From Gracilinanus agilis (Eukaryota): 64,000 bases of DNA. Positions 8,385 to 59,707 of this stretch are shown piece after piece (position 1 is the first letter of the stretch; each line of letters opens with the position of its first letter). The notes beneath the pieces were generated by a model. The model saw nothing but the letters and a program-made list of their open reading frames with translations, ran no database searches and was not told the origin of the DNA. Location: contig NC_058133.1 in the NCBI RefSeq assembly GCF_016433145.1, positions 252,551,881 through 252,615,880 of the forward strand. Reading direction: 5' to 3'. Made by a program: the position numbers and the translations under genes.

Positions 8385-8434
<50 letters not shown>

Positions 8435-11965: not shown

Positions 11966-11971
11966 AATAAA
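11966..11971 (+). terminator. Poly(A) signal, LRCH4 TM isoform
   Basis: AATAAA about 570 nt after the stop codon, followed by GT-containing sequence. Confidence 0.65.
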
Positions 11972-12477: not shown

Positions 12478-12600
12478 GAGTCCCTGTGCCAGCCCCACCA
12501 CATCTTAGAAGAGGAGGGAACCCCTGAAAAGGGCCTCCCCAACATCATCACCGCTGTCCACGCGTTGCTGGAGCAGGCAGGGTCCCGTGGGCATTCTTAG
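12478..12600 (+). CDS. LRCH4: LRCH4 alternative terminal exon completing the CH domain without a TM segment (ESLCQPHHILEEEGTPEKGLPNIITAVHALLEQAGSRGHS*)
   Basis: Pyrimidine tract + CAG at 12475-12477; phase 0 matches the exon 17 donor at 10934. Resembles the LCxPHHILEE..xxALL CH-domain end of LRCH1-3. Own AATAAA at 12999-13004. Confidence 0.85.
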   Translation, partial: ESLCQPHHILEEEGTPEKGLPNIITAVHALLEQAGSRGHS

Positions 12601-17505: not shown

Positions 17506-19578
17506 CTACTGCAGCCCAACAACTGGAAGACGACAGTTGTCCCTTTTGCTACATTCATCACCCTTGTTGGAAAGGGAGGAAGGGTTGACAAGGGCACCCT
17601 GACTTGCACACTCACCCTCTTCACCCAGCCTCCCGAACTTGATCTTGGCATAGGTATGGGGCCGGGCCCCACGGGTAGGGACCAGAGGACGAGCCTGAGC
17701 CTGGGCCTGACTGCTTTGTCCTTCTTGCCCCGGAAGATCCAGGTCGACGTAGTTGAGGCTGCTTTCCCGGTTGGCAGTGGGAGTCTCCTCTGCCCTGCCG
17801 GCCTCCATGGCTAAGTAGACTGGACCTTCAATGCATTCGTATTCCTCTGCCGGCTCCAGAGCCCGGGGGGTTGTCAGTTTACTGGCATCCTGGTGTTTAC
17901 AGCGGCCGCTTTGGCTATCGTTGCAAGTCGCCGGATTGCCAGGGGGAAGCAGCTTTATTAATCTGTGCTGCGGCTCTGAGTAGTGGGGCACTGAGCTGGA
18001 GGAGTTCCTCGGCGACTCCGGGAAAGACCGATCCATGGTCATATATTCGGAGCCACCCCAGTTTCCAAGTGGCCGATTTGGAGGATTAGGAAGCGATGTA
18101 TCCGTCGGGGGCAACCCCATCACCATGTAACCCTTGGCCTCGATGCCTCCCATGGACACATAGTCGCCCTCGGCCTCCATAGCTATGTAGTCCCCCAGCC
18201 CACTTGGCTCCAGCCCCACCTCTGCCTTGAGGGCATAGCTCCCAGCATGGCTCTCTTCTCGAGCCACACCCCAGGCCCGAGGGGGGCTCATCTGGATATA
18301 ATCTTGGCCCCGGTGAGCTCGGGCAGCGGGTGTGGTTGGAGACTCGGGTCGGGCCAGGGCCGGGGACTTAGGGGCGGCCGGGGAGGTTCCCTGAAGTTGC
18401 TGTTCTGTGCCCAGCCCGGTCCCACCAAGCCGTTTCATTGCGTCCAGCACAGTCTCATGGATATTCCGGGCCACCAGCGCGTCGGGAGCCTGCAGCCACA
18501 GCTCCCCCGGCCCTGTGGGTGCCGATCTGCCGAGCTCCAGGAAAAAGAAGGCGTCGGTATGGCCACAACGCCGCACACTGAGTAGGGGCAGCGAGAGGGC
18601 AGGGGGCGGCAAGGAAGGGACACGGCGAGGGCTTCCGGATTCCCAGACCTCTCCGGTTTCCCTGGGCTTCCGCATGAGCCCCAGCGCCCCGGAGCTCAGG
18701 CACAGTCGGTAACAGCCGCAGCCCAGGCTACGGGTCTGTAGCCCGAGCCCCTTGGGCCGCAGGGTCACTGGCCACACCTCCTGGCACGCAGCGGGGTCTC
18801 GGGCCCCGGAGTCCTGGTCCGGGCTCCAGCCTGCAGGGAGGGAGGAAGGATGACGGGGAGTCTGAGCGGACAAATTCGGAAGACCCGGGTAAAGGGACCT
18901 GCGGGATTATTTCTGCAATGAGTGCCCCTAGGGGGAAGGCGGGATCCGGATAAAAGGAACCCACCGATGGAAGGAAACCTTTTGCCAGGTTCCCCACTAG
19001 GAACCTCCACAGGTCTAGACTTCTCCCCCTGGTGGACAACCCAGACTATCGTCCGGGACTCCCTGGACCGCTTTTATCTTCCTTCTAGACCTGAGGCTCT
19101 CACCTGTGCTTGCGCCCCCGGCGGCAATGGCGGTAGTCGCGGCCGCCGCGCGGAGCTCGAGTATGGCGCGGAACCAGGTCTGCTGCTCCTCTTCACTGGC
19201 AGCCGCCAAGCCTAGGCTGCTGTAGTGAGTGTAGAGTAAGATAAGGTGGCCCAGACGCGTATCGGCGCTCTTGGTGATAGTGCACGCTCCCACCAAACTC
19301 ACGCTCCACTTAGGGCGCACGGCCGTGCCACCTTGCAGCCCCGGCTCTTTCTCGGCGCAGGTAGCGCGAAATTTCTTCTCACTCTTGTAGCATTCTAGTC
19401 GCGGAGGCTCTGCGCGGAGCACGAAGAAACGAAGCCGCTGCGACTTTTGCTTCCGCAGATGACCGCAGAGCCATACATCAGTGGGACAGGACCAGGGCAG
19501 AGGAACGGTCCGCGAGTCTGCGGAGGAGTGGGACTCCAGGGTTGCACCAACCCTAGTACCACATGTGCCCTGCTCCAT
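17506..19578 (-). CDS. IRS3: Insulin receptor substrate 3, intact, 599 aa, 2 exons
   Basis: Exon 1 19578-19104 (ATG in aagATGG context), GT-AG intron 19103-18831, exon 2 18830-17506 (1800 nt total). PH domain CGHLRKQKSQRLRFFVLRAEPPRLECY, PTB domain VWPVTLRPKGLG..SVRRCGHTDAFFFLELGRSAPTGPGELWLQAPD, YxxM motifs, NYVDLDL and TYAKIKF. An upstream in-frame ATG at 19689 is possible. Confidence 0.95.
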
Positions 19579-20029
19579 CTTTGGGCCTAGGGGTCGAAGA
19601 ATTGACCTAGACTTGGAAGCAACTAGGGAAAGAGAGGGTGGGGGAGTTGTGGACGTGAGTTCTGAGTAATGAATGAAACGTGCATGCATTCTGCCAGGTA
19701 GGGCAGTTCTTTAGTGGGGCTAGGTCTTCAGGGCTGCTTGAACCCCGCTGTCTCCCCAGCGCTGGTTAAGCTAACCCAGGAGAGCTATCGCCTGAGTCCG
19801 CTGCTATCTCCTAGCTCCGACTTCCCCAGGGGGAAGGGGAGAGAGTGGCACAGCGAGCCCAGGTTCAGTTGGTCAGCGCTGTCTGGCTTCCCTGTGAGTT
19901 CCTTAGGAGTCTGGGGTGGACGCAACAACTCTAGCTCCTTTGGCAGTCCCTGGGGACTGCTACCTAGACCGCTCTCAGAGTCCCACTCTTCTAGGGATTT
20001 AACCCCCTACGGACCAGAGGGAATACTGG

Positions 20030-20700
20030 GGTAAGGCGGGGACGTTAGGATTTTGCCTAGTAAGGGAAGAATTGACCGGAAACTTGAGACTCGGCATTCG
20101 CCACCGCGCGGCGCTGTAGCGAGTTGCCAGAAGTCGCTTGTGAGGGAAGAATTTCGAGCCTGAGGAAGAAGGGAAGGATTGTGTCTCCCGGCGTCAAGCT
20201 CGAAGGGTGGTGTTTGAGACGTCGGCCAATCAATCCCTTTGGACAAACCGGCCAAGTGCTGGCCAATAGGCATTCGCCGCCAGTTACCTCCTCGCCCCGC
20301 CCTCCCGCTCCTGGCGGTGGTCTGGCGATTCGACCTCAGCTCCAAACTACCCCGCCCCCAATCCCTACCGAATCCCCTCCCCGCAGTAACCGTGAAGGCG
20401 AAGGCGAAGGCGAAGGCTGAGGCTTTATCAGCTGTATTGGTTGCTTGTAGTTGGGTCGGAGTAGGAAGAGTTTAGCAGTTTAGCGTAGTTTTTTATTTCC
20501 AGTCGCCGGAAGATTTTGAGAAGGCCTGCAGCGGCCCCCAGCGGAAGGCCAGGCCCACCAGGACCCCAGCCAAGTGTCCGCTGAAGGAGACCCTGGGAAG
20601 GAGAAAGAGACTGTTGGGAGCGGTAGTTCGATGCTTCTGCCCCTGGGTCGGTCTTGAGCCGAAACCGAATAGGCTCCGGGGACTTTTTCGTTAGAGCAAT
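20030..20700. promoter_or_regulatory. CpG island upstream of IRS3 (probable IRS3 promoter), overlapping the last rhomboid exon
   Basis: CpG-rich; CCAAT boxes near 20226 and 20263; GC boxes (CCCGCCC) near 20296 and 20351; (GAAGGC)4 at 20394-20417. Confidence 0.6.
20492..20497 (-). terminator. Putative poly(A) signal overlapping the rhomboid stop codon
   Basis: Minus strand reads TGG AAA TAA AAA, so the stop is embedded in AATAAA. Confidence 0.45.
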
Positions 20701-21854
20701 GTGGACATTAATCGAATCCCCTATGTGGACACTTGTGTAAGAGCAGTTTGAAGAAGGGCATTATCTGAGGTCACTGAGCTCCTGAAGAGTGAGGAGCCCC
20801 AATGAAGGGGCAAATGAACACATGATGCAGAAACATAAGACGCCACGTGGCAAAAGCCCGGGGAATCGGGATCAGGAAAATCTTAGAAATTAGGGAACTT
20901 CATTGTGGCCGCAGTTGCACCATGTAATTCTTAGCACATCAGGAGTCAGGTCCGCCCTCACATACACACATAGTCTATGAATCCTGGTGAAGTTTACGTT
21001 TGTCCCCAGCCCAACCCAAGCACCCCACTCACTTGGGGGCGATTACGCTGACCACCAAAGATTCTGCCAGGCACAACAATAGGTTCCCCACAAGGTTGCT
21101 GTCGGAGCTGGACATCACCTGCATGGCAAACAGGACACCTTGGGGGTGGAGGGGAAGAGGACTCCATGGGTTTACTACCCTCCAGGAGTCCCAGATTCTC
21201 TTCCCACCCCCTCTCCTTTCCAAAGGAATCATGAAAATTCCCAGCTACACGGTATAGCTTCATCCTTGGGAGAAACATAATATAGCTCAAGGCAAAGCAA
21301 TTTCTCTGGATATTTCAGGCTGGATTAGTGTGGAGGTTCAGAATGACTGCTCTATCCAGAATTTGGTTGACCTGAAGCAATGGAAGACTGATTTTCCATG
21401 ATACCACCCTACCCCGCCACCCCTGGGGTTTTTTTTCTCTTTGAAATAGGATTTTCCTGTCCCTCCTTGTACCCGAGAAGCCAAGCGCACAACCAGCACG
21501 GTAACCAGGATCTCGGAATGGCACCTCCATGGCCAAGTTGAGGACAAGGTGAAGGAAACCTGTGAACAGCGCAGCTGAGAACATCAGGATTAGCATTCGA
21601 CCTGTGCCCACAGACTGTTCCAGATGACGTCCAGTCAGCCACAGCCCCACCACATTGCAGGCGAGGTGCCAGGGGTTCTCATGGTGCACAGGTGCCAGCA
21701 GCAGCAAAAGCCACCAGCGGTTGGCTGTAGCCAGTGAAAGGCAGGAATTGTTGGGGTCCAAGAGTGGCCACAGGAACAGGCTTATAATAAAGGATATGGT
21801 CCCCACTGTGGCTTGGGGCCAGGGTACTGGCCCCTCTTTTATTGCTATCACCAT
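20493..21854 (-). CDS. RHBDD1/RHBDL4-like rhomboid intramembrane serine protease, 195 aa, 3 coding exons
   Basis: Exons 21854-21473 (phase 1), 21138-21033 (phase 2), 20592-20493; GT-AG introns; 588 nt open frame. Protein: MVIAIKEGPVPWPQATVGTISFIISLFLWPLLDPNNSCLSLATANRWWLLLLLAPVHHENPWHLACNVVGLWLTGRHLEQSVGTGRMLILMFSAALFTGFLHLVLNLAMEVPFRDPGYRAGCALGFSGVLFAMQVMSSSDSNLVGNLLLCLAESLVVSVIAPKVSFSGHLAGVLVGLAFRWGPLQAFSKSSGDWK. Contains HHxxxWHxxxN, GFSG (Ser127) and GHLAG (His169). The exact N-terminus is uncertain. Confidence 0.9.
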
Positions 21855-24210: not shown

Positions 24211-24934
24211 TGGTGGATACAAAGATTTGCTGGCTATAAGTGTTCTGTGGTTGAGCTGGGATGCAACAGGAGAAGGAAACCACCTATGGCCCACTTTACA
24301 AGTGAGGAACTGAAGCAAACATGGTTAAGTGACTTGCTCGGAATCACACAACTATCATGTGAAGACTAGATTTGAATTCAGGAAGATGGCACTCTCCACT
24401 TCCGCCATCTAGCTGCTCCTGAGAGGAAGTTAATGGCAATCAAAACAGCTTTAGAGGGTAGATACTTAAAGGGGAAAAAAGCTGGAAACTTAGGTGGTGT
24501 CCATCAACTAGAGAACAGCTAAACAAACTGTGGTATATGAATTGCCACAGTAATGGTATATTACTATGCTATTAGAAATGAAGAATGAAGGGAGATTTCA
24601 GGAATTCTGCCAAGATGTATGAACTAATTCAAGGTGAAGTGAACAGAAGAGTAACTTAAATAAGGACAACACTATAAATAAAAACAACTTTGAGAGACCT
24701 AAAGGAACTATTATGAAAGCATTTGTATACCTCCTACAGAGCTGGTGGACTCAGTGTGCAAAAAGACACTGTATGGACTTGTTTTGCTTGACTATCTGTA
24801 GACACAGTTTGTTTTTGGCAGGGGGGATATGCAATTATGATGCCAAAGGAAAAATAGTGGCCACTGAAATACTTTTTAAAATGCACAGAATATTCAGGAG
24901 GAAGCACAAAGAACAGCTTTGAAAGTAATGCAAA

Positions 24935-24940
24935 TTTATT
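24935..24940 (-). terminator. Putative AGFG2 poly(A) signal (about 3.1-kb 3' UTR)
   Basis: AATAAA on the minus strand in AT-rich 3'-end-like context; position is inferred only. Confidence 0.4.
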
Positions 24941-27900: not shown

Positions 27901-28038
27901 GCAAGGCAAGTTCTGCCCCATCTTGGGCTGAGATCACAGTAATGCCAACAAACAAAGGTGGCCACCAGGGTTCTAGGGAACAGAGGGATACTTGGGGGTA
28001 GAGGGAGCAGGAAGGATGATGTCCCTCTGGGCACTGTG

Positions 28039-31000
28039 CTACAAGAAGGGATTCGTAGGAGGAGGTTTGGAGGCAAATGGGCTTGATGAGGGTCCAGTCT
28101 GAAGAGAAAAGAACAAAATAAATAATAATCAGATTCAGGAAGAGGAAATGGCAAATTCCAGCGTCAATCCCACCCCCAAACTGTGTCAGGAAAATGTGGG
28201 ACAAGGAAACAAGACCTAAAGAGAGAAGATAGGTTCAAAGAAACAAATAGAAAAAGGACTAGATTAGAGACCCTTGAGTCAGAATCTGACCTAGACAGCA
28301 GCCAGCACAACACAGAGAATTCATTCCTAATTATGTCCAGTGACACAGGTCCCTATTTCCAACACATCCACATGAGGTCTCCCCACACCCTCTAGATTTC
28401 TTCAAGAGTCATTCTCTTCTTGCCTTACCATGAAGGGGTTGGTAGAGATCCCTGCTGGATGGCTCACAGGCCTTTGCCCCAGTTTGGCTGCTCCTAACCC
28501 CACAAAGCCAGAGCCTAAAAAGACAAAAAAATAAAATAACACCATTTAATTTCAATGAATAGTAGCATTCATCAGAGCTTAACCAAACTTATCATGGAAA
28601 GGTAATATAAACCTGGACAATCTTTCTTGTTTCCCCAGATAGTAGGCATATTCCACATTCCCAGCAGGGACTGGGGAAGAGAAAAGAAGATACTCCCAAG
28701 TTTTGGGGGATGTGTACTCCTAAGGCTCCTCACTTGAGGATACACAGGTTTTATTCCTTCTTTACTACTCTATACCTATATATAAGAAAATGAATAGTTA
28801 TCTCAATTCTACTGTGAAACAGAATTAGAGTCCTTTACCATTCTGCTGTTGAACCAGCAACGTTTGTGGAGGGAGGAGACTGGGAGAGAAAGTTCCAGGG
28901 AAGCCACCTGGGGTTGGTGCAGAAGAAAAGCTAGGAACCACAGTGTTCATCCCCAAACCAAGTCCTGTGGATACAAAGCAGATGAAGTGGAACTGAGCCT
29001 CTGAAAGACAGGATTCAAGTCAGTTTTATCAAGACTATACTTGATGAGAGAAACAGGTTTCTCCAGACCAAAAATCAACTCATTTAGTTGTCCTGAATAG
29101 AACTCTAAAACCTTCAGCTTCTAGATCAACCCTGAGTCCACTGCCAACCATGTTCAAAAGCAGAGGGGCTCTGGAATTCAGGGTTCCAAAGAGAGTACTG
29201 TATTCATGTTGTTGCTGCATATAGTTAGTTGTACTTTTCCAAATGAATTTTTAAGAGTTCTCTTAATTTCTTTGAGAATTTGGGAGTGGGAAGGCTAAGA
29301 CCACTGAGGTTGGGAAAGTTAAAGATGAGGAATAAAATGGGAGACTACAAGGTGAGACAGCATGGATAACATGGCCCTGGATGACAGAGTTCCTAAAGGA
29401 GAACAGAAACAGAAAAGAGTTGTTTATAATAAGGAAAACTGGGAGGGTGTTGGTAAGGGAAGGAAAGAGACTGTCTATTATGAAGCACCACTGAAAATTA
29501 CTTCAGAAGTAGCAAAGAGATACAAGTATTAAGGGCTCCAACTTATTAAGGAAAAAGGGATTCACCCACAGTGATATGGCAGAATTTGGCTCATGGTGAT
29601 TATGAGTTAAAGTTGGAAAGACAGTGATCAAAAACAAAAACAATCTGATATACCTATAGCTTCCAGTGATAATCTGAAGGGGGAGAAAAAAGACTTCCTT
29701 AAAAAGATGCTTGGAAATCTGGAGACGACAGAAAACAACAAAAGAAACTTACCTGAGGCCAGGCCATTGGATTGGAATGGGTTGGTGGAAGGCAACTGTG
29801 GATGAGGAGCCGGTGCTATGAAAGGGTTGGTGAAAGCTAAATGTTGAGGAAGTAGGTGAAGGCACAGTTAGTATTTTCTTACTGACAAATATTTTTCAAT
29901 CTTCCTTGGCCTGTTTTTCACCCTCTTTCTCCTTTCCAGTACCCCTAATCTCTGCTGCCTTTGTTGATTTTCTCTTACTAGGTTTCCACATAACCCTAGC
30001 TCCCTACAAGTGGAACTCACCCCCATATCCAAGTCCAGTACTGCTGCTGCTGCTGTTATTACTGCCAGTAGCAGCAGTGTGGAGTCCAGAGACATGGCCA
30101 ACAGTCCCAAAGGCTCTGTGAGAGAAGAGAAAAACTCTATTACTAGTATCAGGGAAATAAGAATCCTCCACTATGAACTAAGAATTATTGGATGCTCATG
30201 CAAGCAAATCTTGGTCCTTACCTTCAAAGGTATTAAATAGAAGGTATTGAGAGGAAAAAGCAAGGAAAGCTAGGGACTGCATGGAACAGAGTGTCAGGGT
30301 CAAAAAAAAAAACAAATCTAGGCTTTTCACTTCTCTTTCTTATGATGGGGAATCCACAATCTCAACCTACCTACTAGGAATGCCCCCAGTTGACATTCCA
30401 GTTCCCAAGACATTGCTCATATCTGAAAGGGCACTTGGCTGGTTGGCAGGAGCAAGAGGAGAGGCACCAAATGGCGTCACCTGGCTGCTGCCTGTGAAAA
30501 GAAATGAGACAAGTATAGTGATAAGAGAGAAAGGTGGAGGAAGAGAGGGACTACCCCTAAGTTTAAGAGGAGATATTCCTCCCCTAATCCATCTCCAATC
30601 CTTAATAAAAAGTGGGGGCGGGGCAGAGTTAGGGCTATATTATACTAATATTTCTAGAGATCCAGAAATCTAAACCTCCTTTACTACTCCAATGTCCAGG
30701 AGCTTTTATCCCTTACGAAGCTGTGTTTTTTTCTTATCTCTTTCCTTGTTCTAGTTCCAGCCACATTTTTCTGATTTCTGACTTCAAAAGATGAGAAAGC
30801 CTGTCCTTGCTCAACATCCTAATAGTCCTATCTTGCCAAAATAAAGGTAAGTAGGAGTGAGTCAATAGTGGCAAGTTAAGGGTTCTAGATCTGAATGTAC
30901 CAAATCAAATAGATCTCAAAAAGGAGATCCACCTGCTGTGGAGTCAGTCCCACCTAGTGAAGCCAACCAGCTACAATCTGACCAGTTTGACTATTCTTCA

Positions 31001-49000: not shown

Positions 49001-52000
49001 TTAGTTATCTAGGTGTCCCAGGGCCCGAAAGTGGGCAGGAGAAGAAGAAAAGGGTGGAAAGGGGTGGATATCTCAAACTGGTTAGGCTTATCATCTAGTG
49101 AAGAAGAAGATGAAAGTTTATACAAGCAGTTTACCAGCTCTGGTGTGGCTCTGGCCAGGCTGTACCAGAGAGAAGTTATCATCTTAATTCCTTTACTGGC
49201 CTACAGTTAGAGATTAATCATCATCATCATTTTAACTAGGTTCTCCCAATACCTCTATCCAATCCCATTATCCTCCTTTGTTAAATATAATTGAAGTTTA
49301 AAGTGCCTTCCTGAAGTGGTTATTCAAAGCTTCTTTGGGAAGGGAGAGATGCAGTCAGATTCCAACGTTACCCAGCTAAAGAGCACATTAAATAATATCA
49401 ATTAACCCCACGTGGGTCCTGAAGGGATATCATCCATTGACCTAAAGGATCCTGCCTGGGCAACTGTTATAAAGGAGAGAGATGTCATCTTATCCTCTCT
49501 CTATACTTCATCTACATCTACATCTAATAGACAGGAGTATCAGTTTTTATTATAACAAAGGTAAACTCATTAGGTCTGCTCTGACTTTCTCCCACTCTAC
49601 TTCCTGCAGGCTTATTCCTTTTTTAACAAGGGGAAGACTAGGGACATTTTTTAGAAGACAGTGACACACAAGCAGAATTCATTGTAAAGCTTTGTTCTGC
49701 TACCTTATCACTCAATCTATAGGATTTAAAGACTGAAATGAGATCTCTATATCTTTGCCCCTCTATAAATTATGCCTTTGTATCTGACACTTACCTGATT
49801 AGAGCTGGAAATAGCAGAAGAGGGCCCAGGGTCCCCAAGAAGTGTCTTCAAGGGCTTTACATCTGAAGTTGAATCTTGGGTAGGGGTAGAGGTGCTGCTT
49901 TTGGCATAGGATGATCCCTTGACTTGGTCTGGGGGAACATACCTTCAAGGAACAAACAAGCTAAGTGGAATAAGAAGGAGTACCAACTAATTATCCCCCC
50001 AGTTTATGTGCTCTCTGAACTTCTAGGAAAGCATCCATTATTGTATATGAATCAAATCGTGTTGTTTTCAGAATTGGAAGAGCATTTAGAGATCCTCTCA
50101 ACTAATGCAAAGATATCCTCTTCAAATGGGTTCTGAACCAGATTAAAATGTAACTGGGGAGGATTTAACATGATAAATAAAAATACAACAGAACAGATAA
50201 CATTACATTTTCAAACTAAGCCAATATGTGGTCTGCAGTATGGATTTGTAGTCTCCCTTTTTATTTTAGTTTGACCCCACTGACCTAGAACATTCCTGAC
50301 AGGTGGTCATGTAGATGCTACAGAAACACTTTTAGTAACAAGGAATCTACACAAGAACAATAATGATAATAATAAAAATAGTGAGGATTCACTTGACACA
50401 CACACACACACACACACACACAATTTGATTACAAGGCAGTCCTTTCTATTAAAAAAAAATTGTACTGGACTTTTTTTCTTCTTTTAAACTCTCTCCTTCT
50501 GTCTTAGAATCAATATTATGAACTGATTCCAAGACAGACGATTTCCTTAAATATCCCTTTGCCTACAATTTGCATTTTTTTCTACAGGTAGGGTTTCTAT
50601 TATATAATTCCCAAGCTTCCAAACTCTGCATCTCCATATTTCTATAACTCCAGCTCTTATCCTTTCTATCTCTAAACATCCCTTTGTGCCTCAGTGTATT
50701 TATTAAGATAATAAAGGGTCAGGCTTCATTTGGTTGGTAAGTTTTATTTTATTTTTTTTTTAAACCCTTAACTTCCGTGTATTGGCTCATAGGTGGAAGA
50801 GTGCTAAGGGTGGGCAATGGGGGTCAAATGACTTGCCCAGGGTCACACAGCTGGCAGGCTTCATTTGGTAAAATACCTGCCTCCAACTTCTTTTCCCACA
50901 AAAGATACCAACCTGTTATGAATAAACACACATTGCTGTCAGCCTTCTAATTAATGCTTCCATCATTCTAATTAATCCACTTATGTTAAACTTGAGGAAC
51001 ATCAATTATACATGACATATGATTAAGGACAAGAAATACTGTCCTTCAATAAAGATTAGGTCTATAGAATTATGACAGGATTTAACTGTGATTGAATCTA
51101 TAAAAACTTAACCTAAGCTTCCAGAAGAGTCACAAATTCATATCTGGAAAGTTGTATTTGGAAAAAGAGGAAAAATATATAGCACACATATCTATGTTAC
51201 TGTTTCCTCCCTCCTCCATGATTACCATCGCTTCTTCTCATATTTCTCTTGAAGAAACTCCTTCACCTTTTGAGGGTCCCTGGAATCTGGGACTATGGAG
51301 GACTGTGCATCAAAGAGGCCTAGCCAGATCTTCCTACAAACCTGTGTGGTACAAAGAGGAGACCCAGGTAAACAAAGTGCTGGAGAAGACAATGTAAAAA
51401 CTACACACATTTTCAATCAGGAAAATGTTACTGATACAGATTAAACTTAAAAGTATAACATACAAGCATTTCCCCACACACAGAGAACTGTTAATGTTTA
51501 TCAGTATAATGAGGCCACTAATGGTCTTAAGAAATGGGTGGTTCCTAGGCTGACAGAGCCCCTTGTCTTCATGATCCAAGTTCCTCATACTGGTCAGTGT
51601 GAGGAACATAAATATGCCACACTAACAAACATTCCACAAACATTTAGGCTTAGTTGAGAACTTTTTTCAAAAGGAGTTGAATTCAACAAATATTTATTAA
51701 GAATCTACTATGTGTAGAGCACTATTTTAGGCACAAAAGTAGACGCAGAGTCTAGATAGAAACATTACAGCTTTTTTCTGACAATGTACCTATGTCATCT
51801 TGACTTTTTTGTTTCAATCCCTTTGGGATGAGGGAGATCTAATTCAGAAATATTAAATCTAGAAAATGTGGGGAAATGTCCAAGAAAGTTTATTAGTTGG
51901 TACTCATCATAGCAGTGATTATCTGTTGACATGTTTGGTCCACAATTTTTTTAAAATTCTCCATTTGTTTTTTTAAATGGGACTGGAGTGTCAAAAAGGC

Positions 52001-55000
52001 AACATTTCCCAACTATGTCTTGAATACAAAACCCATTCTTGGTTGGCTCAGGTTGCACAAAAACAAGCTCTACAAAAAATTTGGAAAACTGCTTGAGGAG
52101 TGGATTTCAATACTTTTTGAGACAATTTAGCTAGACCTTTACCCTACTTCTCAGTTTAATAGAGCTCTGACCTAATCATAGTGCTAAATACTTGTGAGTG
52201 ACGATCAGGTTTTGAGAATCCAGTCTTATTACGGGTCAAAAAAAAAAACACAAAAAACCCCCAGAAATTCCATGTCACACAAGCATAAATTTCTTTCTTT
52301 TTTTTTTTTAAACCCTTAACTTCTGTGTATTGGCTCAGGGGTGGTACGGGTGGGCAATGGGGGTCAAGTGACTTGCCCAGGGTCACACAGCTGGGAAGTG
52401 TCTGAGGCCGGATTTGAACCTAGGACCTCCAGTCTCTAGGCCTGGCTCTCAATCCACTGAGCTACCCAGCTGCCCCAAGCATAAATTTCTAATACCTACT
52501 ACCTTTAGACTGGGCCATGTAGATTAGGTATATGTCCTTGTATAAAGGCAAATCTACAGGCATCTCAGGATCATACAACTAAAGAAAATGCTGGAAGGAA
52601 CTTAAAGTGGTCATTTAATTCAGTCCTTTCATTTAATAGATGAGAATTGAGGCCAAGAGAAGTTATGTCATTTAGGTGCTCAGTGATGTTCCAGAAAAAA
52701 ACAATTCTATAATCAAATCAGTTATGCTTGGGAATGAATGAATCTTTTTTAATTCTGCAATTACAAAAGAGAGAGAAGCAGGTTGAAAATTACATTTAGA
52801 CTTTTCTTTCCAAAAAATAAGTTTCACAAAGAGGGTTTTATACCTTACACCAAAAGGGAACAAAATGTTATCAATTAATACAGTTTGCAGATTGCATAGG
52901 GGCCAAGAAGAGGGTATCTTCAAAGGAAAAGAAAATAAAAGTGTGGCTGTCTTTATTTCCTGGAACTGTTTCACATTCTTGCTATCATTATCAGCAAGAT
53001 CTTGCAGAGTTAGGACAAAGAACCTTTTAAGCTTAAAAATAATATTTTGAATTCCTACTGTTCAGTTGAGAATTCGAGCTCTTTATGTCTTCATTAGTGA
53101 AAAAGCCAACAGGCAACCTTGGACTCCAAACCTGGTGTATATTTTCTTCTACTGTACCATATGCTGCCTCTTTGAAATAACACTGATTCTCAGAATTCAC
53201 AGTTTTATGTATAATGAATTCATTTTCTTTTTTTGTTATGAACTTGACAAACATCAGACATGAGTATTTCCATATATGACAACCAGAGTCTTTATTATTT
53301 ACAGCTTGGTTTTTTTGGAAGTATATATTAAATTTGACCCAGCAGTCTTAGCACTATTCTGCCTGACTGGGTTCCCTTCTGAGCTTTCTTCTGCTCTCTT
53401 CTGTGTATGTTTTTAAATGCTTTACTGGCACTCTTTTCTTTCTTTTATTTTTTTGGCAAGGAATTAACTTCACAGAAAGTGATTTTGAGTTTGTCTCCTT
53501 TTCCCTGCTTACACCTTTAATGAAGGTCATGGACAAACCATAAACTATGTCATCCTGAACAAATAACACAATGTACCCTAAATCCATTGAAAAATGTTAA
53601 GGGGTGAAGCATGGCCTTGCCTTGAGGCCCCAATTCAGGAACTAAATCTGGAGAGATATATAAGTAAATAAAAGAAAATACCCATCAGTAGCAAAACTTG
53701 GGGCAAGTTAGGGAAGAGCCAAGATATTGAAGGTGGTAGGAAGCAGTGTGGTGGATTCTCATCCACAAACGTCTCCAAAAAGATCCAGAAAATGTACTAG
53801 TCTGAATCTTGATGAGGAAATCCAAAAAAGGCCATCATGAGACCTTTGTTCAGCCCAGATTGGCAAAGGGAGGCATATAAAGTCTTTGGACACTTGGGAT
53901 AGGTTCTGTCCAGGAACATGCAGCATGAGGAGCACTACAGCACCCAGAGAGTCTAACAGTGGTCTACTTTTGTACATAGCCAAAGAATTCAGAGACCTGC
54001 AGAGATTACACTCAGACCTGGATCAAACTATTCTGGGAGCACTAAAAGCTCACAGGTTCCCTAGTCTATCCCTGAGATCCTGGAATAACACAACACTCAA
54101 TACTCCAAGAATGATCCTGATTATCCCTCTAGAAGTGTTGCAAGAGCCCAGTCCTAACATCAAGTATGAAGTCAGAAAGTGGTCTGGAAGAATGAGTAAA
54201 CAAAACAAAACAAAACAAAAAAAACCCCACTTGTATTATGATAGGGATGCTTATAACAGAAAAAATGTCTCTACATCTATAAGCAAAATCTCAGAAAAAA
54301 AAAAAGCACAGGAACAAAACTCAAGTAAAATTCCTAGAAGAGATGAAGCAAGCGAGAGTTTTTAAAATGTTTTTATAAATGGAATGAGGAAAATACTGGA
54401 AAAGAAATGTGAATTACAGAAGAAAGGCTTGGAATTAATAGGGCCTGGCATACAAAATTCAAAACTTTGCTCAAGCAATAAACTCCTTGAAAATTAGAAT
54501 GGACTAAATAGAAGATAATACTTCCATGAAACAACAGGAAATATTAAAACAAAGTTAAAGAGCTGAAAAAATAGAACTGTAAGAATATCTCATATCAAAA
54601 ATAACCTCCTGAAAGAAATGCCCAAATGAAAAACTCCCAGAAATGTCATAGTCAAAAAATCCAGACACACACATGTCTGATGTTTGTCAAATTCATTATT
54701 ATTGTCAACTCTATTCAAAACTTGCCTTAAGGGAAGTCCCAGACTGACCTTGTCTCTGATTGGACAATAAACCTTAAAGTACTTAATGATCCCAGTTTGG
54801 GTGGAATAATTAAATCTTAAATACCTTTTTTAGAAGTCCTTTCCCAGGTAGCCCAGCCCCTGGCTGGCATCTTCATTTTGAATCCATTGTAAAACATCAG
54901 ACTCTCCCTGACAATCCAGCCCTGAACTCCTCATTACCTTGTGGCCACTGTAAAGCTAATCAATCATACCTGCCAGTCTTTAATTCCCCAAAAGACATAC

Positions 55001-58000
55001 AAGACCCTATGCTCTAGTATTCTTTGGAAAATCATCTTTGTGGGTGAATTTTCCCAGAGACACTGTTACCAGAATCCCAGAGCTCTGGCTCTGTGTGGTA
55101 TTAAGTGCTTGAATCTGTGTGTCGGCCAAATATTGAACACCGTATCTAGCACTGACTAAAGATTTGGTCTTGCTGACTACTTTAATGGTTTTGTGTTTTT
55201 CCAAGTTGACACTATTAAGAAGCAGAGAACTACAAACACAATTTTCCAGAAGCCAAATTTATCTCACAAAACTGAGTAAAATATTATAAGGGGGTGTCAA
55301 CATGGAATCTAGAAGCTCCCAAACTTGTAGCCTAGAAAGATTTAATGAACCCCAGTTTAGTTAGCTTAAAGGTGAAAGCCCCAGGTTTGACCTTGTCATA
55401 TGAGAGTTTCTCCCTGAGGGAAGAGTCCAACTTCACTAGTCTCAGACTAACAAAAAGACCTTATTTTGAGTTTGTGTGGAGATGATCATTCCCATCAGGG
55501 CCAAGCCCAAGCAGAGTAACCCTTTGGAGCAGTAGGCAGCGCTTCAGTCTCATAAACTGAAGGTTCCGAGTTCAGTCCTCGAAAGGATGATGTGATATAT
55601 AATGAGAGAGTCTTCTGGAGACAAGAAGAATCACTCCACTTGGGAACCCCAATTTTGCCCCTGTCCCCTAAAAACTCACCCAGGAGAGAAGTCCCAGACT
55701 CACCCATTTCAGACTGAACAATACACTAGCCTTTCCTGATAAACCTATCTGGACTTATCATTTCCTCCTTATAGCCAGGATAAAGCCAATCAATCATTCT
55801 TCCCTGTCCTTAGTTCCCCAAAAAGTATAAGATCCTCCAGTTCTATTATTCTTTGGAGAATCTTTCTAGCAGGTTGATCCTTCCAGAGACACTGTCCCCA
55901 GAGGACAGTTTTGATTCTGTGTAGTGCTTGGCTCTGTGTAGGCGGCCAATTATTATGGACTTATCTCTTTCCTAATTAAAGACTTGGTTTTTAGACACTT
56001 CCCAGCTGTGTGACCCTGGGCAAGTCACTTGACTCCCATTGCCTACCCTTACCACTCTCCTGCCTTGGAGCCAATACACAATATTGACTCCAAAACGGAA
56101 GGTAAGGGTTTAAAATTTTAAAATATTAAAAAATTTTAAAAAATTAATAAAATAAAGACTTGGTTTTTATGACTACATTGGTAGTTCTGTGCTTTTCCAA
56201 GTTGACACAAAGAAGAGAGGATGGGACTGGGCAGGAGTGATTGAGGATTCTCAACTGAACTTTCTTTTTTCAAAAGAACATTCCATGTAAACTGGAATGA
56301 CCTCCAGGAATTGATGCAGAGTGAAAAGAGCAGAGCTAGAAGAACATTGTACACAGAGACTGATACACTGTGGTAAAATCGAATGTAATGGACTTCTGTA
56401 CTAGCAGCAATGCAATGACCCAGGACAATTCTGAGGGATTTATGGAAAAGAATCCCACATTCAGAGGAAGAACTACAGGAGTGGCAACACAGAAGAAAAA
56501 CAACTGTTTGAATACATGGGTTTATGTGGACATGATTGGGGATGGAAAGTACCACACCAATGCAACTATCAATAACATGGAAATAGGTCTTGATAGATGA
56601 TACATGTTAAAACTAGTGGAAATACGCGTCAGCTATGGAGGGGAGGGGTGAAGGGGAAAGTAAGAACATGAATCATGTAACCATGGAAAATTTTTCTAAA
56701 AAATAAAAAAAGAATAATAATTTTAAAAAAAGAAAACAAAAAAAATCAAAAGAACAAAAAACACACAGGCACAGAAATGGAGATAGGGGATTATGGGAAG
56801 GGAAGATTAAGAAAGGGATTAGTTCTAAGTAAAACAAAGTCTAAGGATGTCTTTGCCTCTTTTTTGTATCCTCAGTGGCTAGCACAGTACGTAGATCACA
56901 GTAGGCATTTAATAGATGATTACTGATTGAATGGATATACAAAAATATTAATATTTTTTGATAGCAAAGAATAGGATTCTGCCAGGGGAGGCCCAAAAAT
57001 TGAGGAAATAAATGAACAAGACATTAAATAAATATGATTGAAAACTACTGTGCTGAAATCGTAAGAGATCTTAGTATACAATATTACAAATGGTAAAAGA
57101 TTTATGACAAAAAAAATAACTAACTACCCAAGCTAAGAATAATCTTTCAGGGAAAAGAATAGATCCTGAATGGAATAAAGGACTTAGAAAGATTTCAAAT
57201 GAAAAGACCAGAGTTGAATAGGACTTTTAAAATACAAACACGAGTCCAGAGAAATCTAGGAAAGTAAATTTATTTTAGCAATTGGAATGAGTTGTATGTT
57301 TTCTAATAACTGGACTGCTTGAGAAGCAGAGTACACAAACACAGAAAAAGAGGTAAAGGAAGTGGGCATCAGATAACTCACTCTTATCCGAAATGAGCAA
57401 AGTGTTGAACACACACATGAGTTTGATGAAGGAAGACATCAAACTCAAAAGAGAACAGGGGAAAGGGATGAGGGGTTAAGAAAAGGAGGATATCACTAGG
57501 GAGAAATAATCACAAGCAAAACAAACTTCTAGATGCTAAAAGAGAATTTAAAAAAGATAAGCCAAGAATCAGAAAAGAATGAGGTATTTTACATTGTCTA
57601 TGGCATGTAAATATATTTTAATATTATTGTGCCATAAAAAATAGCAAAAGATCATGCCAAAGAATTCTGGGTAGCACGAATTGATAGAGAAATGTGCAGA
57701 ACCATAAGAACAATTTAGATAATGACATTTTAAAGAAAACTAACTTTGAAAGACCTAAATACTTCTGTTTAAATTAGTGACTATGTCTTCAGAAAACCTA
57801 TGATGAAACATGTTATACACTTCCCAGTAGAGAAGTGATGGACACAAGGTTCAGAGACACATATTTTTGAAAATTATGTGAATTTGTTTTGCTTAGCTAT
57901 ACTTATTTATAAGTATTTTTTTCCACCTTTCTTTTTTTTTTTTAGTTAATTGAGGAGTAAGGGAGAAAGGTAAAAGGTGTGAAAGGAAATTCTTGGTTCT

Positions 58001-59707
58001 CTTTGTCTAGTCTGAGTTTACACTTGTGAAAAGGGAATCCTTTAATTCTCTTTGCCTAGTTGGAGATAAAACTTTGGTTAACAATAACTTAAGTACCCCT
58101 ACTTAGTACCTCACTAGATTGTGAAGACAGGATTAACTCTCCTTTGTCTAACTTTTGATTGAATCAACAAAAGCTTGACTAGGTGGAGGAGCTTGCAAAC
58201 CACTTAAGAGAATTCACACCCTCTTCAGAAATTCAATCAGTCAGGAATCTGTGAACCCTTTTTATGAGAATTACCCCTCCAGAAGGTGAGATGTGGATCC
58301 CACAGACACTGTTCCCCTCCCCCCCCCAAGCAATTTGGAAACTGTGATTGGTCCCTGTGAAGAGGGGAAGGGACAAGAAGCCACCATAAAAGGTCCTACA
58401 TTTCTGGGGCTAGAAGTCAGTCAGCTTCAAGAAGTCAGCTTCAAGAAGAAAGTCGGCCTCAGGAGTCATTTGCAGCTCAAGTCATTGTCTTGACCTACCT
58501 CTTGGAGGGAACTTAGGAGAAAGGACAGAAAGGCTGTCCTTTCCTGTCTTCTGGAGAGAGTTTAATCCTGGTTGAAGGTCAACAAGTCCTGGCTGAGTCA
58601 AGCACCAAAGCAATATTTAAGATAGATAGGTTAAATGTCTTCTCTACCTTTCTGTATTTCTCCACTTTCATTCTTTCTACCTCTTTTTTTTTTAAACCCT
58701 TACCTTCCATCTTGGAGTCAATACTGTGTTTTGGCTCCAAGGCAGAAGAGTGGTAAGGGCTAGGCAATGGGGGTTAAGTGACTTACCCAAAGTCACACAG
58801 CTGGGAAGGCCAGATTTGAACCTAGGACCTCCCCTCTCTAAACCTGGCTCTCAATCCACTGAGCTACTCAGCTGCCCCCTCTTTCCACCTCTTTTGTAAA
58901 TAAAAGCTATTAAAAGTCATTTTGACTTAAGCAATAATACTTTAAATTGGCAACTACCATATTATTTATAACCATATATTTTAGTCAAAACACGAAAATT
59001 TAGTTCCTACAGAGGGAAGGGCTGGTAATAACAATACCAAAAATAAGGGCTATTTAATTGTTTTTAGAAATGCACAAAAGTGGGGACAATAGGTGGCACA
59101 GTGGATAGAGCACCAGGCCTGGAATTGGGAAGACTTGGATTCAAATGTAGCCTCAGAAAATTCCTAGCTGTATAACCCTGAGCAAGTCATTTAACTCTAT
59201 TTGTCTAGGGTTTTTTCCCTTCTGTCTTAGAATTGTTACTAAGACAGGAAGTAAGATGTGTTTTATTGTTGTTTTTAAAGCATAAAAGAGAAGAAAGTCT
59301 ATAAGAAGCATGGCCAAGCAAGGCAGTTTTGAAAGCAACATGCAGATTTCAGTTTTTTAAAGCAAGTAGTTTGAAATGGAGACTCACGGTTTCATATTAA
59401 ATCATCTTTTTGTATTGAGCTTTATGCATGGAAATGCTTTTGTTGTTTTTTAAATTCAGAAATAAAAAAATTGTTCTCCTGCCCCCAAAAAAGACAAGAA
59501 AATATTAACCAAAAGGAAAAAAAGAGTCATAAGTCCAGAAACACAGAAACCCTTTGTAATAGGCTTCAGGTAAAACCAAGGCCTTCTAACAAACTTATCT
59601 GTGGGCACCTCACCTCATTTCCACGAGATTGGAGAAACATCACTTCAGGCTCCGTAAAGGTTGTCATGGAGATGGATTTGACTCGGTGAGGGGGATTTAG
59701 GCCTCTC
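28039..59707 (-). CDS. AGFG2: ArfGAP with FG repeats 2 (HRB-like), exons 2-12; 5'-partial, exon 1 outside the window
   Basis: Exons 59707-59614, 51341-51226, 49942-49795, 48299-48161, 39522-39397, 30491-30371, 30115-30021, 29836-29753, 28964-28839, 28514-28429, 28098-28039; all GT-AG and phase-consistent. Motifs RGLNPPHRVKSISMTTFTEPEV, VCRKIWLGLFD..DSRDPQKVKEFLQEKYEKKRW, KKASTDLLADIGGDPFA, GGFANFDAF, four TNPF (NPF) motifs; ends TNPFL*. Confidence 0.96.
31130..31330 (+). mobile_element. SINE1-type SINE, diverged
   Basis: Head, core and tail recognisable; ends in poly-A. Confidence 0.75.
31382..31570. mobile_element. hAT/Charlie-type MITE remnant
   Basis: Ends cagaacttcttaacct..ggattaagaaac resemble degenerate hAT terminal inverted repeats. 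Confidence 0.45.
31715..31990 (+). mobile_element. hAT (Charlie-like) DNA transposon left end, truncated
   Basis: Starts CAGGGATCTGCAACCT, a hAT-type terminus; no right TIR found. Confidence 0.55.
33399..33599 (-). mobile_element. SINE1-type SINE
   Basis: Full-length core and poly-T end. Confidence 0.85.
34276..35471. mobile_element. hAT (MER58/Cheshire-like) DNA transposon with a nested SINE
   Basis: Left TIR CAGGGGTTGGCAAAC; degenerate right TIR ..agcttgcccattccta; 8-bp TSD aattagat (34268-34275) / aattaaat (35472-35479). Confidence 0.7.
35147..35345 (+). mobile_element. SINE1 (Monodelphis-type), young
   Basis: ggggcagctgggtggctcagtggattg.. full-length copy. Confidence 0.9.
36996..37199 (+). 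mobile_element. SINE1, young, with 11-bp TSD
   Basis: TSD TCTGAGGGCTG at 36985-36995 and 37200-37210. Confidence 0.92.
37485..37682 (-). mobile_element. SINE1-type SINE
   Basis: Full core on the minus strand. Confidence 0.85.
39655..39842 (+). mobile_element. SINE1-type SINE, diverged
   Basis: ggaggtcctgggttcaaat..ccaatacacagtattgatt. Confidence 0.75.
40331..40560 (+). mobile_element. MAR1-type CORE-SINE with RTE-derived tail
   Basis: CORE followed by ctggagaaagaaatggc..aagagtcagtcacaaccg..actgaacaacaa. Confidence 0.8.
40775..40975 (-). mobile_element. SINE1-type SINE
   Basis: Full core on the minus strand. Confidence 0.85.
41432..42087 (+). mobile_element. L1 3' fragment (ORF2 end + 3' UTR + poly-A)
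   Basis: ggaatactattgtgctataagg..atgcagagtgaaataagcagaaccaggagaacatt; A-tail near 42074. Confidence 0.85.
42305..42480 (+). mobile_element. SINE1-type SINE
   Basis: Head and tail recognisable. Confidence 0.75.
42490..43240 (+). mobile_element. L1 3' fragment
   Basis: ORF2 C-terminal remnants (MVQPFWRAIWNYAQRA..; ILIATLFVVAKNWK), 3' UTR and AATAAA. Confidence 0.88.
44019..44208 (-). mobile_element. Young SINE with 13-bp TSD
   Basis: TSD CAATCAAGCTTTT at 44006-44018 and 44210-44222. Confidence 0.9.
44758..45410 (+). mobile_element. Solo ERV LTR inserted in an L2
   Basis: Starts TGTGAAAGGGAAT; TATA-like tatataag near 44950; AATAAA near 45267; flanked by CTTC (44754-44757, 45411-45414). Confidence 0.65.
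45919..46291. mobile_element. Tc1/mariner (Tigger-like) MITE
   Basis: TA TSDs at 45917-45918 and 46292-46293; imperfect TIRs CAGTCGTCCCTCGCTATATC / GATAGGTGAGAGATCACTG. Confidence 0.75.
50735..50854 (-). mobile_element. 5'-truncated SINE with 15-bp TSD
   Basis: TSD CAGGCTTCATTTGGT at 50720-50734 and 50855-50869. Confidence 0.88.
52295..52476 (-). mobile_element. Young SINE with 14-bp TSD
   Basis: TSD AAGCATAAATTTCT at 52281-52294 and 52477-52490. Confidence 0.92.
53900..54670 (+). mobile_element. Decayed L1 5'/ORF1 region
   Basis: A-rich, with ORF1-like ends (cccagaaatgtcatagtcaaa). Confidence 0.5.
54703..55211 (+). mobile_element. Solo LTR (TGTCAAC...GTTGACA family), copy 1
   Basis: 7-bp terminal inverted repeat; 3' end similar to copy 2. 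Confidence 0.55.
55295..56207 (+). mobile_element. Solo LTR (TGTCAAC...GTTGACA family), copy 2, interrupted by a truncated SINE at 55994-56152
   Basis: Terminal inverted repeat; the SINE is flanked by a 17-bp TSD TAAAGACTTGGTTTTTA at 55977-55993 and 56153-56169. Confidence 0.65.
56272..56760 (+). mobile_element. L1 3' UTR fragment
   Basis: Same 3' motifs as 42800-43240; A-rich tail. Confidence 0.85.
57978..59011 (+). mobile_element. ERV LTR (TG...CA) with a nested SINE at 58688-58879
   Basis: TGTGAAA starts at 57978 and 58025, AATAAA near 58900, ends CCTACA. The SINE is flanked by a near-perfect 16-bp TSD (tctttctacctctttt / tctttccacctctttt). Confidence 0.6.
59082..59255 (+). mobile_element. 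CORE-SINE, older
   Basis: ggggacaataggtggcacagtggatagagcacc.. head and core. Confidence 0.75.

Follow-up and report, generated by a model that had tools for sequence, protein, structure and literature searches.

A tail-less RHBDD1-like rhomboid gene beside marsupial IRS3, very probably an ancient duplicate tying IRS3 to the IRS1 region

The window, the whole 64-kb stretch of Gracilinanus agilis (opossum) DNA analysed here, carries on its minus strand IRS3, a rhomboid gene and AGFG2, in that order. The initial annotation had placed the rhomboid directly between the other two, and this was borne out, with all three genes on the minus strand. The rhomboid gene is auto-annotated in NCBI as 'rhomboid-related protein 4-like' and is called RHBDD1-like in this analysis. 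No paper describing it was found in the literature. The features of the locus are as follows.

1675..12600, plus strand: LRCH4, leucine-rich repeat exons, with weak LRR matches; numerous exons match the LRR-domain gene that adjoins mouse Irs3
14500..16180, plus strand: SAP25, between IRS3 and LRCH4, matching the mouse Irs3-Lrch4 interval and a platypus gene with Pfam SAP25
17506..19689, minus strand: IRS3 orthologue (PH exon ORF 19015-19689; PTB and YxxM tail ORF 17506-18873)
20493..20592, minus strand: rhomboid exon 3 (VSFSGHLAGVLVGL...), encoding TM6 (catalytic His, GxxxG) and ending in a stop 26 residues past the catalytic His
21033..21138, minus strand: rhomboid exon 2 (VLFAMQ...VIAP), end of TM4, shortened L4/5 loop and TM5
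21473..21854, minus strand: rhomboid coding exon 1, from Met to GFS and the first base of the Gly codon, TM1-TM4 with the HxxxN and GxSG motifs
about 27977..59707, minus strand: AGFG2 from exon 2 to the last coding exon, located by an ArfGap match and exon matches
near 59707-59600, 51350-51225, 49944-49750, 48317-48099, 39598-39311, 30639-30370, 29867-29631, 28545-28405 and 28099-27977, minus strand: AGFG2 exon pieces

The IRS3 orthologue comprises two ORFs, of which 17506-18873 gives a Pfam IRS-type PTB match (E 1.9e-13) and 19015-19689 a Pfam PH match (E 2.5e-4). An 'IRS1-like' protein of Gracilinanus agilis (P0338) matches it with 100% identity, and the gene is collinear with its counterparts in mouse (Irs3), platypus and turtle. 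Exon 2 of AGFG2 (about 59707-59600) encodes the ArfGap motif RGLNPPHRVKSISMTTF; its Pfam ArfGap match (E 2.7e-4) falls under the gathering score, as expected with a single exon. The AGFG2 exons in the window match those of turtle, mouse and platypus AGFG2 by tblastn, and a conserved 3'UTR reaches ~24800, while exon 1 was not found within the 64-kb window. Collinearity with the wombat locus extends along the whole stretch, and the annotation there reads ArfGap - Rhomboid - SAP25 - LRCH4, with SAP25 called at the equivalent place, so that the IRS3-rhomboid-AGFG2 order is not due to chance.

The rhomboid gene (20493-21854) consists of three exons forming an intact ORF of 195 codons, the stop codon of which lies ~0.8 kb from the 5' end of IRS3. 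Both introns are GT-AG, the first in phase 1 and the second in phase 2 (a slash marks the splice site below). The donor of exon 1 is G/GTACAA; exon 2 has the acceptor CCAAG/G and the donor AA/GTGAGT. Exon 1 is 74-75% identical to its Australian marsupial orthologues and by itself scores 46.9 bits against the Pfam Rhomboid model (cut-off 22.6), and exon 2 is 79% identical to that of the wombat. An alternative acceptor located 14 nt inside exon 2 yields frame-shifted isoforms, which are found in the database (P0001, P0005, P0006 and P0008). The TAA stop sits within an AATAAA signal, and this combined stop/poly(A) motif is conserved in the wombat. The window rhomboid is a genuine protein-coding gene with introns and a paralogue of RHBDD1/RHBDL4, which was the nearest family in every search.

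The HLACN motif is encoded by exon 1, GFSG spans the exon 1/2 junction, and SFSGH lies in exon 3. The catalytic Ser (GxSG, TM4), the His of TM6 and the HxxxN motif of TM2 are invariant across 31 aligned sequences. Judged by its Pfam score and catalytic motifs, the predicted protein belongs to the Rhomboid family (MEROPS S54, Pfam PF01694). The Sarcophilus orthologue, which scores 62.8 bits with Pfam Rhomboid, was used as a 75% identical stand-in for the window protein and gave a confident six-helix fold model (pLDDT 89, pTM 0.84). The best structural matches of this model are GlpG rhomboid proteases (TM 0.6-0.69, Foldseek probability 1.0), while a PDB sequence search returned no match to any solved structure. 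Escherichia coli GlpG, the structural prototype of rhomboid proteases, has the same Ser-His dyad on TM4 and TM6, but the identity is 17-20% and the marsupial L1 region is devoid of the WR arginine. At this position in the alignment, the marsupial copies read WW-LLLL, without Arg, whereas all other family members have WxR. The marsupial L4/5 loop is also ~10 residues shorter. Derlins and iRhoms have the rhomboid fold and appear as weaker structural matches; the catalytic Ser or the catalytic His is missing from these proteins, whereas the window gene keeps both.

The six-helix core and the HxxxN, GFSG, SFxGH and GxxxG motifs are common to the window protein and RHBDD1/RHBDL4. Unlike RHBDD1/RHBDL4, the window rhomboid has no N-terminal hydrophobic extension, and neither a ubiquitin-interacting motif nor a VCP/p97-binding motif (LSEEEQ...RxSL, RRxRLxRF) was found in it. 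Tail-less genes named 'rhomboid-related protein 4-like' occur in marsupials, turtles, caecilian, coelacanth, sharks and rays, and are referred to below as the 4-like genes. Those of sharks retain only an RRQRRRC end, and the WR arginine is kept in the turtle, caecilian, coelacanth and shark members. The marsupial protein has thus retained the rhomboid core of six helices with its catalytic elements (HxxxN, GxSG, TM6 His, GxxxG), but not the cytosolic tail. It would most likely act in the secretory pathway as a minimal intramembrane serine protease, cutting its substrates without coupling to p97-driven ERAD.

In the turtle Mauremys reevesii, an orthologous rhomboid gene lies on the plus strand between IRS3 and AGFG2, both on the minus strand, and is therefore head-to-head with IRS3 and tail-to-tail with AGFG2. 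A rhomboid beside IRS3 and AGFG2, which the initial annotation would have looked for in non-mammalian vertebrates, is thus present in at least this one. Given this orientation in the turtle, it is the marsupial gene that has been inverted, and the local inversion that had been proposed from gene orientation is upheld. The turtle gene (XP_039355755, 199 aa) resembles the marsupial one in locus, three-exon structure, tail-less length and clade (98/97); it differs by its opposite orientation, an identity of only ~35%, the retained WR arginine and a longer L4/5 loop. The caecilian 4-like gene is that of Rhinatrema, on LR584402.1 at 22.74-22.77 Mb, and the skate gene is on scaffold JAMYXN010000100.1. 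In the 10 kb flanks of these two genes, and in those of the teleost RHBDD1 locus, no conserved exon was found, whether of an IRS gene, of AGFG2 or of any other gene. No rhomboid remnant was found in the mouse Agfg2-Irs3 interval, or in the platypus AGFG2-IRS3 interval, though both species have kept IRS3 and AGFG2. Protein searches returned no orthologue from other eutherians or from several other lineages. The suggestion that the gene was lost in eutherians agrees with the mouse locus but was too narrow: since platypus has lost it too, eutherians are not the only mammals without it. Retention is seen in marsupials, turtles, a caecilian, the coelacanth, sharks and rays, and loss in mouse and platypus.

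Seven marsupials carry the gene. Orthologues of 192-199 aa are found in Sarcophilus, Vombatus and Macrotis, and isoforms in Sminthopsis, Notamacropus and Phascolarctos. Between opossum and wombat, gaps occur only as multiples of three in exon 1 and are absent from exon 2, while the introns are indel-rich. The overall dN/dS for this pair is 0.54, with dN below dS (Fisher p 0.014); exon 1 alone gives 0.42, and exons 2-3 give 0.8-1.3 on few sites. The marsupial copies evolve fast, under only moderate purifying selection. It could be argued from these ratios that the opossum gene, whatever its age, is a decaying relic, either transcribed noise or a non-catalytic remnant heading for loss, a reading with which the vanished WR arginine, the loop shortened by 10 residues, the frame-shifted isoforms and the loss in mouse and platypus, the mammalian lineages examined, are consistent. 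This is unlikely: despite a dS of ~0.27, marsupials from America and from Australia alike have an unbroken ORF, both pairs of splice sites and all of the catalytic motifs. A neutral ORF of 588 nt at this divergence would be predicted to show several stops or frameshifts, and the fact that the ORF has none counts against decay, as do the deficit of dN relative to dS, the confident structure model and the conserved stop/poly(A) motif.

Both introns of the window gene (GFS/G, phase 1; and phase 2, one codon before SFxGH) coincide in position and phase with those of canonical teleost RHBDD1. The earlier deduction from intron positions, that the gene is a genomic duplicate and not a retrocopy, therefore holds. 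Amphioxus has the GFS/G intron as well; its intron near TM6 is located ~5 codons upstream of the vertebrate one, so that only the GFS/G intron is demonstrably pre-vertebrate. The part from the initial Met to GFSG has no intron in the window gene, unlike canonical RHBDD1. The missing first-half intron is only suggestive as a shared character; its interpretation as a clean shared loss was dropped, since the early introns of amphioxus and teleost RHBDD1 differ in position.

A protein search based on words, with exon 1 as query, returned marsupial matches only, which taken at face value would suit a recent marsupial-specific genomic duplication of RHBDD1. This result reflects the sensitivity limit of the method and not an absence of relatives: outside the marsupials, the closest relatives in an exhaustive search include '4-like' proteins of a caecilian, the coelacanth, sharks and turtles, and 4-like genes are present in nine chondrichthyans as well as in sarcopterygians. 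Scyliorhinus, Heptranchias and Mobula are among the cartilaginous fishes that carry them, and the coelacanth is Latimeria. In the phylogenetic tree, a clade of canonical gnathostome RHBDD1 (95/94), in which RHBDD1 of the marsupial Antechinus groups with that of other mammals, excludes the window gene, and joining the marsupial copy to mammalian RHBDD1 gives p 0.043 in the AU test. The window protein is thus not nested inside marsupial or mammalian RHBDD1, a placement that would have refuted the initial proposal. With an identity to any RHBDD1 of only 35-40%, and with a turtle orthologue at the same locus, which refutes it, a recent marsupial duplication is extremely improbable. A cichlid '4-like' protein (P0016) was also considered as a member of the 4-like group and was rejected, the tree identifying it as a divergent teleost RHBDD1 duplicate.

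The 4-like genes of marsupials, turtles, caecilian and coelacanth form a sarcopterygian clade with support of 98/97, which stands when the sharks are removed, whereas the shark and ray genes join it at 77/38 only. The branches are very long (~2.7 substitutions per site for the marsupial stem), and long-branch warnings were issued by the tree program. Long-branch attraction is therefore possible, and the tree alone cannot reject a duplication at the sarcopterygian stem; grouping the sarcopterygian 4-like genes with sarcopterygian RHBDD1 is not rejected by the AU test (p 0.29). Five signature sites were found at which all gnathostome RHBDD1 have a derived residue in common while the 4-like genes keep the residue of the outgroups and lamprey. 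No site was found in favour of nesting the 4-like genes within gnathostome RHBDD1. As sequence characters, these sites favour an early split of the 4-like genes from RHBDD1.

The window gene lies beside IRS3 and AGFG2, and not beside IRS1 and COL4A4 as does RHBDD1. IRS1 and RHBDD1 are taken by us to be head-to-head, and AGFG1 is presumably on the same chromosome arm as IRS1. The head-to-head arrangement of IRS3 and its rhomboid in the turtle would mirror this assumed layout. In mouse, Rhbdd1 and Nyap2 are reported to flank Irs1, and Agfg2 and Nyap1 to flank Irs3; the description of these neighbours gives adjacency only (PMC5482937). The neighbours of an ohnologue are expected to be themselves paired, and the IRS3 block agrees with this, given the NYAP1/NYAP2 pair and the presumed AGFG1/AGFG2 pair, with IRS3 and AGFG2 shown to be adjacent in opossum, wombat and turtle.

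The AU result, the low support uniting the shark and sarcopterygian genes and the long-branch warnings leave room for a later, small-scale event, in which a copy of RHBDD1 made at the sarcopterygian or tetrapod stem was inserted next to IRS3. The '4-like' genes of sharks and rays would then be an independent duplicate, and fast evolution would pull both towards the base of the tree. Such a history would require an insertion by chance next to IRS3, in the very head-to-head layout that we assume for IRS1 and RHBDD1, within a block already pairing NYAP1 with NYAP2 and AGFG1 with AGFG2. At five sites the ancestral residue would further have to be exactly restored, with no site supporting nesting, and both the absence of a tail and the absence of an intron from the first exon would need two separate origins. 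It is regarded as improbable.

The block duplication is preferred: RHBDD1-like is probably a real RHBDD1 paralogue that was duplicated together with IRS3 before jawed vertebrates diverged and was inverted in marsupials, and its product is predicted to be a tail-less protease. An ancestral pair of IRS and rhomboid genes would have been duplicated as a block, giving IRS3 and RHBDD1-like, most simply in the course of the vertebrate whole-genome duplications. The ancestral layout may have been that still seen in the turtle, with the rhomboid head-to-head with IRS3 and tail-to-tail with AGFG2, and an inversion of the small rhomboid gene in the marsupial lineage would then have brought all three genes into the same direction. 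The initial proposal of a whole-genome-duplication paralogue is supported by synteny and by the logic of the paralogon, and the tree by itself still admits the later sarcopterygian-stem duplication. It is an evenly balanced proposition that jawed vertebrates ancestrally had a second, tail-less RHBDL4-type protease, uncoupled from ubiquitin and p97, which arose along with IRS3 during the early genome duplications and at first had a bidirectional promoter region in common with it. This enzyme would be predicted to work in marsupials, turtles, some amphibians, coelacanth and cartilaginous fishes, and to be missing from eutherians, judging by the mouse locus and the protein searches.

In its treatment of IRS3, a study of the IRS family left open the origin of this gene by genome duplication, because the collagen IV genes characteristic of the IRS1, IRS2 and IRS4 loci are missing from its neighbourhood (PMC5482937). 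The rhomboid paralogue, very probably an ancient duplicate tying IRS3 to the IRS1 region, provides a second paired neighbour besides NYAP1/NYAP2 and connects IRS3 with the IRS1 block. If an ancestral second RHBDL4-type protease did exist, the standard list of active vertebrate rhomboids would be incomplete, and IRS3 would sit firmly in the IRS1 paralogon. An undescribed lineage is added to the small set of vertebrate rhomboid proteases predicted to be active. As it keeps the catalytic core but not the tail that couples to ERAD, it offers a natural experiment on what the tail contributes to RHBDL4, and its patchy retention makes it a good case of the repeated loss of an ancient duplicate.

The window holds no N runs, and its genes are arranged as follows:

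about 1.7-12.6 kb, plus strand, LRCH4
about 14.5-16.2 kb, plus strand, SAP25
17506-18873, minus strand, IRS3 ORF with the PTB domain (Pfam IRS, E 1.9e-13)
19015-19689, minus strand, IRS3 ORF with the PH domain
between IRS3 and AGFG2, minus strand, a small rhomboid gene
near 27977-28099, minus strand, last coding exon of AGFG2
about 59600-59707, minus strand, AGFG2 exon 2, RGLNPPHRVKSISMTTF (Pfam ArfGap, E 2.7e-4)

AGFG2 exon 1 was not found within the window. Comparison by tblastn, exon by exon, supports these assignments, the window being collinear with the mouse Agfg2-Irs3-Lrch4, platypus AGFG2-IRS3-SAP25 and turtle loci; the coordinates and gene order of the initial annotation are therefore correct. 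The window is marsupial: its IRS3 ORF shows 100% identity with a protein of Gracilinanus agilis and 82% with that of Monodelphis. A 4.5-kb stretch 3' of the AGFG2 stop (24800-29350) is 78% identical to wombat, surpassing the rhomboid exons in conservation, and presumably represents a long AGFG2 3'UTR under constraint.

The rhomboid gene consists of three exons totalling 588 nt, or 195 codons (slashes mark splice junctions):

21854-21473, minus strand, exon 1, Met to GFS and base 1 of the Gly codon; donor G/GTACAA, phase 1
21138-21033, minus strand, exon 2; acceptor CCAAG/G, donor AA/GTGAGT, phase 2
20592-20493, minus strand, exon 3; acceptor TTCCCAG/G, stop TAA

Searches used these exons singly, full-length database orthologues being substituted for the complete protein. 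Exon 1 by itself scores 46.9 bits against Pfam Rhomboid (threshold 22.6). Judged by its sequence, the rhomboid core is intact with all catalytic residues: HLACN in TM2, GFSG straddling the first junction, and in exon 3 SFSGH with GxxxG after it. The TAA stop (GGAAATAAAA, 20490-20500) forms part of an AATAAA poly(A) signal, with the IRS3 start about 0.8 kb downstream of it. This motif is kept in wombat (locus L001, 11310-11320), implying that the rhomboid 3'UTR is very short and lies close upstream of the IRS3 promoter. On the minus strand, a short (GCCTTC)n hexamer microsatellite occupies 20400-20425, in the stretch that separates the rhomboid stop from the promoter region of IRS3. An alternative acceptor, CAG/GTGATG, lies 14 nt into exon 2 (21124-21138, minus strand) and is used by several database isoforms (P0001, P0005, P0006, P0008); the resulting frameshift deprives their products of TM5, TM6 and the catalytic His.

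The gene belongs to the 'rhomboid-related protein 4-like' paralogues of RHBDD1 (RHBDL4), here called LIKE. A core of three coding exons, with introns at GFS/G and one codon before SFxGH, is common to the opossum, wombat, caecilian, skate and turtle LIKE genes; that of the skate has an extra coding exon encoding a C-terminal tail. Canonical RHBDD1 of one teleost has introns at both sites with identical phases 1 and 2, and additional ones at residue 51/52 and, three in number, in the tail. Amphioxus RHBDD1 has the GFS/G phase-1 intron in common, its TM6 intron being about five codons upstream and its two early introns placed differently. The RHBDD1-type introns recognized in the initial annotation are thus genuine in position and phase, and, as it had proposed, the gene is a genomic duplicate; a retrocopy origin is ruled out. 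No LIKE gene compared has an intron between Met and GFSG, which is suggestive of common descent, though not a clean shared loss.

In a word search, 'rhomboid-related protein 4-like' proteins of 192-199 residues were found in Sarcophilus, Vombatus and Macrotis, and Sminthopsis, Notamacropus and Phascolarctos yielded isoforms that are shorter or frame-shifted; an opossum-type protein with 98% identity to the window's rhomboid was also returned. From AGFG2 through LRCH4, the wombat contig and the window are collinear, the wombat annotation reading ArfGap - Rhomboid - SAP25 - LRCH4. Between opossum and wombat, dS is 0.27, dN 0.14 and dN/dS 0.54 (0.42 for exon 1 alone), with a synonymous excess (Fisher p 0.014). 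Gaps are multiples of three only in exon 1 and absent from exon 2, and the introns are indel-rich. Purifying constraint on the marsupial gene is real but moderate. The marsupial copies lack the WR-motif Arg, near-invariant elsewhere, and their TM4-TM5 loop is shortened by about ten residues. The AlphaFold model of the Sarcophilus orthologue (pLDDT 89, pTM 0.84) confidently predicts a rhomboid fold, its top structural matches being GlpG rhomboid proteases (TM 0.6-0.69).

As the claim hinges on relatives beyond marsupials, an exhaustive profile search was made. Among the top non-marsupial matches were proteins from a caecilian (Rhinatrema), Latimeria and a sawshark, with turtle proteins lower; all are labelled 'rhomboid-related protein 4-like' by NCBI and rank intermixed with canonical RHBDD1 representatives. 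A profile word search added eight further cartilaginous fishes (sharks, rays and a skate), with canonical 'rhomboid-related protein 4' in the same species. The ubiquitin-interacting motif (UIM) is absent from all non-marsupial LIKE proteins found, and the entire tail from the sarcopterygian ones. In sharks and rays, the C-terminus reads PPRxRRQRRRC (P0191, P0192, P0195-P0197), which looks like a degraded remnant of the VCP/p97-binding motif (VBM). A Logan-assembly rhomboid (P0056/P0328, 178/204 residues, 4.3-kb contig) groups with the turtle genes on a long branch and may represent another sauropsid lineage retaining LIKE. The cichlid '4-like' protein P0016 and its relatives keep UIM and VBM and nest in teleost RHBDD1; they are a divergent extra RHBDD1 outside the LIKE clade. 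RHBDD1 is mentioned repeatedly in a paper on the tilapia sex region (PMC8692795).

Trees were built under LG+C20 PMSF, their branches being assessed by SH-aLRT and ultrafast bootstrap. Canonical RHBDD1 of gnathostomes, with the marsupial (Antechinus) and monotreme sequences among them, groups in one clade (95/94) whose topology resembles the species tree; the family of the window's gene falls outside it. After addition of turtles, the LIKE genes of marsupials, turtles, the caecilian and the coelacanth form one clade (98/97) and those of sharks and rays another (100/100), the two uniting at 77/38 only. The sarcopterygian clade stays outside canonical RHBDD1 once sharks are removed. The LIKE genes have long branches, the marsupial stem measuring about 2.7 substitutions per site, and long-branch effects were flagged by the tree tool. 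A tree constrained to place the marsupial copies within mammalian RHBDD1 lost 13.9 log-likelihood units (AU p 0.043); a recent marsupial duplicate is thus excluded by the tree alone. A duplication at the sarcopterygian stem is not: placing all sarcopterygian LIKE with sarcopterygian RHBDD1 was 7.1 units worse and was not rejected (AU p 0.29). Against such a late duplication stands the comparison of signature columns, chosen as less sensitive to branch length, in which no alignment column supports LIKE nesting in sarcopterygian or mammalian RHBDD1. Five columns show a derived residue common to every gnathostome RHBDD1, those of sharks as well as of mammals, and in these columns two to five LIKE lineages retain the residue of the lamprey and invertebrate outgroups (Ala in LLLAP versus Ser in LLLSP, in 5/5 LIKE lineages).

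Decisive evidence comes from synteny. The turtle Mauremys reevesii has a LIKE gene encoding 199 residues, flanked by two genes on the opposite strand: an IRS3 orthologue, its start codon 4.8 kb away (PH domain 55% identical to that of the window, E 1.6e-26; PTB domain 52%, E 1.8e-22), and AGFG2, its 3' end at a distance of 5 kb and five of its exons matching AGFG2 of the window. The rhomboid therefore neighbours IRS3 and AGFG2 in a non-mammal, in the order IRS3 <-> rhomboid -> <- AGFG2. Very GC-rich tandem repeats encoding Pro/Gly/Arg-rich ORFs (turtle locus L004, 2600-4800 and 6800-9100) occupy the IRS3 intron and the IRS3-rhomboid intergenic region. The relative orientation of IRS3 and AGFG2 is equal in turtle and opossum, the rhomboid alone being flipped. 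RHBDD1 and IRS1 are presumably also head-to-head. On this assumption, and because these two genes are adjacent (PMC5482937), the turtle layout is ancestral and the marsupial rhomboid is the inverted one, in line with the local inversion proposed initially. The ancestral rhomboid would have had a divergent promoter region in common with IRS3; in marsupials, its 3' end would instead abut the IRS3 promoter.

Neither the mouse nor the platypus locus has kept the gene. With ten queries, both LIKE and canonical, no rhomboid match better than E 0.1-0.3 was obtained in the 6.3 kb between the mouse Agfg2 stop and the Irs3 PH exon, or in the 11-kb platypus AGFG2-IRS3 interval, which is mostly repeats. 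The platypus repeats, extending from AGFG2 to the IRS3 PH exon, also match dispersed repeats of the window near 37100, 44100 and 52400, and the platypus IRS3 model (locus L007, 8877-19895) covers 12 kb and carries a LOW QUALITY flag. The exhaustive protein search returned no LIKE protein from eutherians, monotremes, birds, squamates, frogs or ray-finned fishes. The proposed loss in eutherians is therefore too narrow: the gene is gone from the platypus as well as the mouse locus, and the protein searches turned up no orthologue for other eutherians or for several further lineages.

A full-text literature search found no paper on the RHBDD1-like paralogue, which is known only as automatic LOC annotations; the window's gene adds a member to a known rhomboid family. 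RHBDL4 recruits ubiquitinated clients and p97. In contrast, the window's rhomboid, in which neither UIM nor VBM is recognizable, would act in the early secretory pathway as a minimal intramembrane serine protease, cutting membrane substrates but itself unable to recruit ubiquitinated clients or p97.

Mouse Irs1 is flanked by Rhbdd1 and Nyap2, and Irs3 by Agfg2, Lrch4 and Nyap1; whether IRS3 arose by genome duplication was stated not to be determinable (PMC5482937). The window's rhomboid supplies the missing paired neighbour for IRS3 relative to IRS1.
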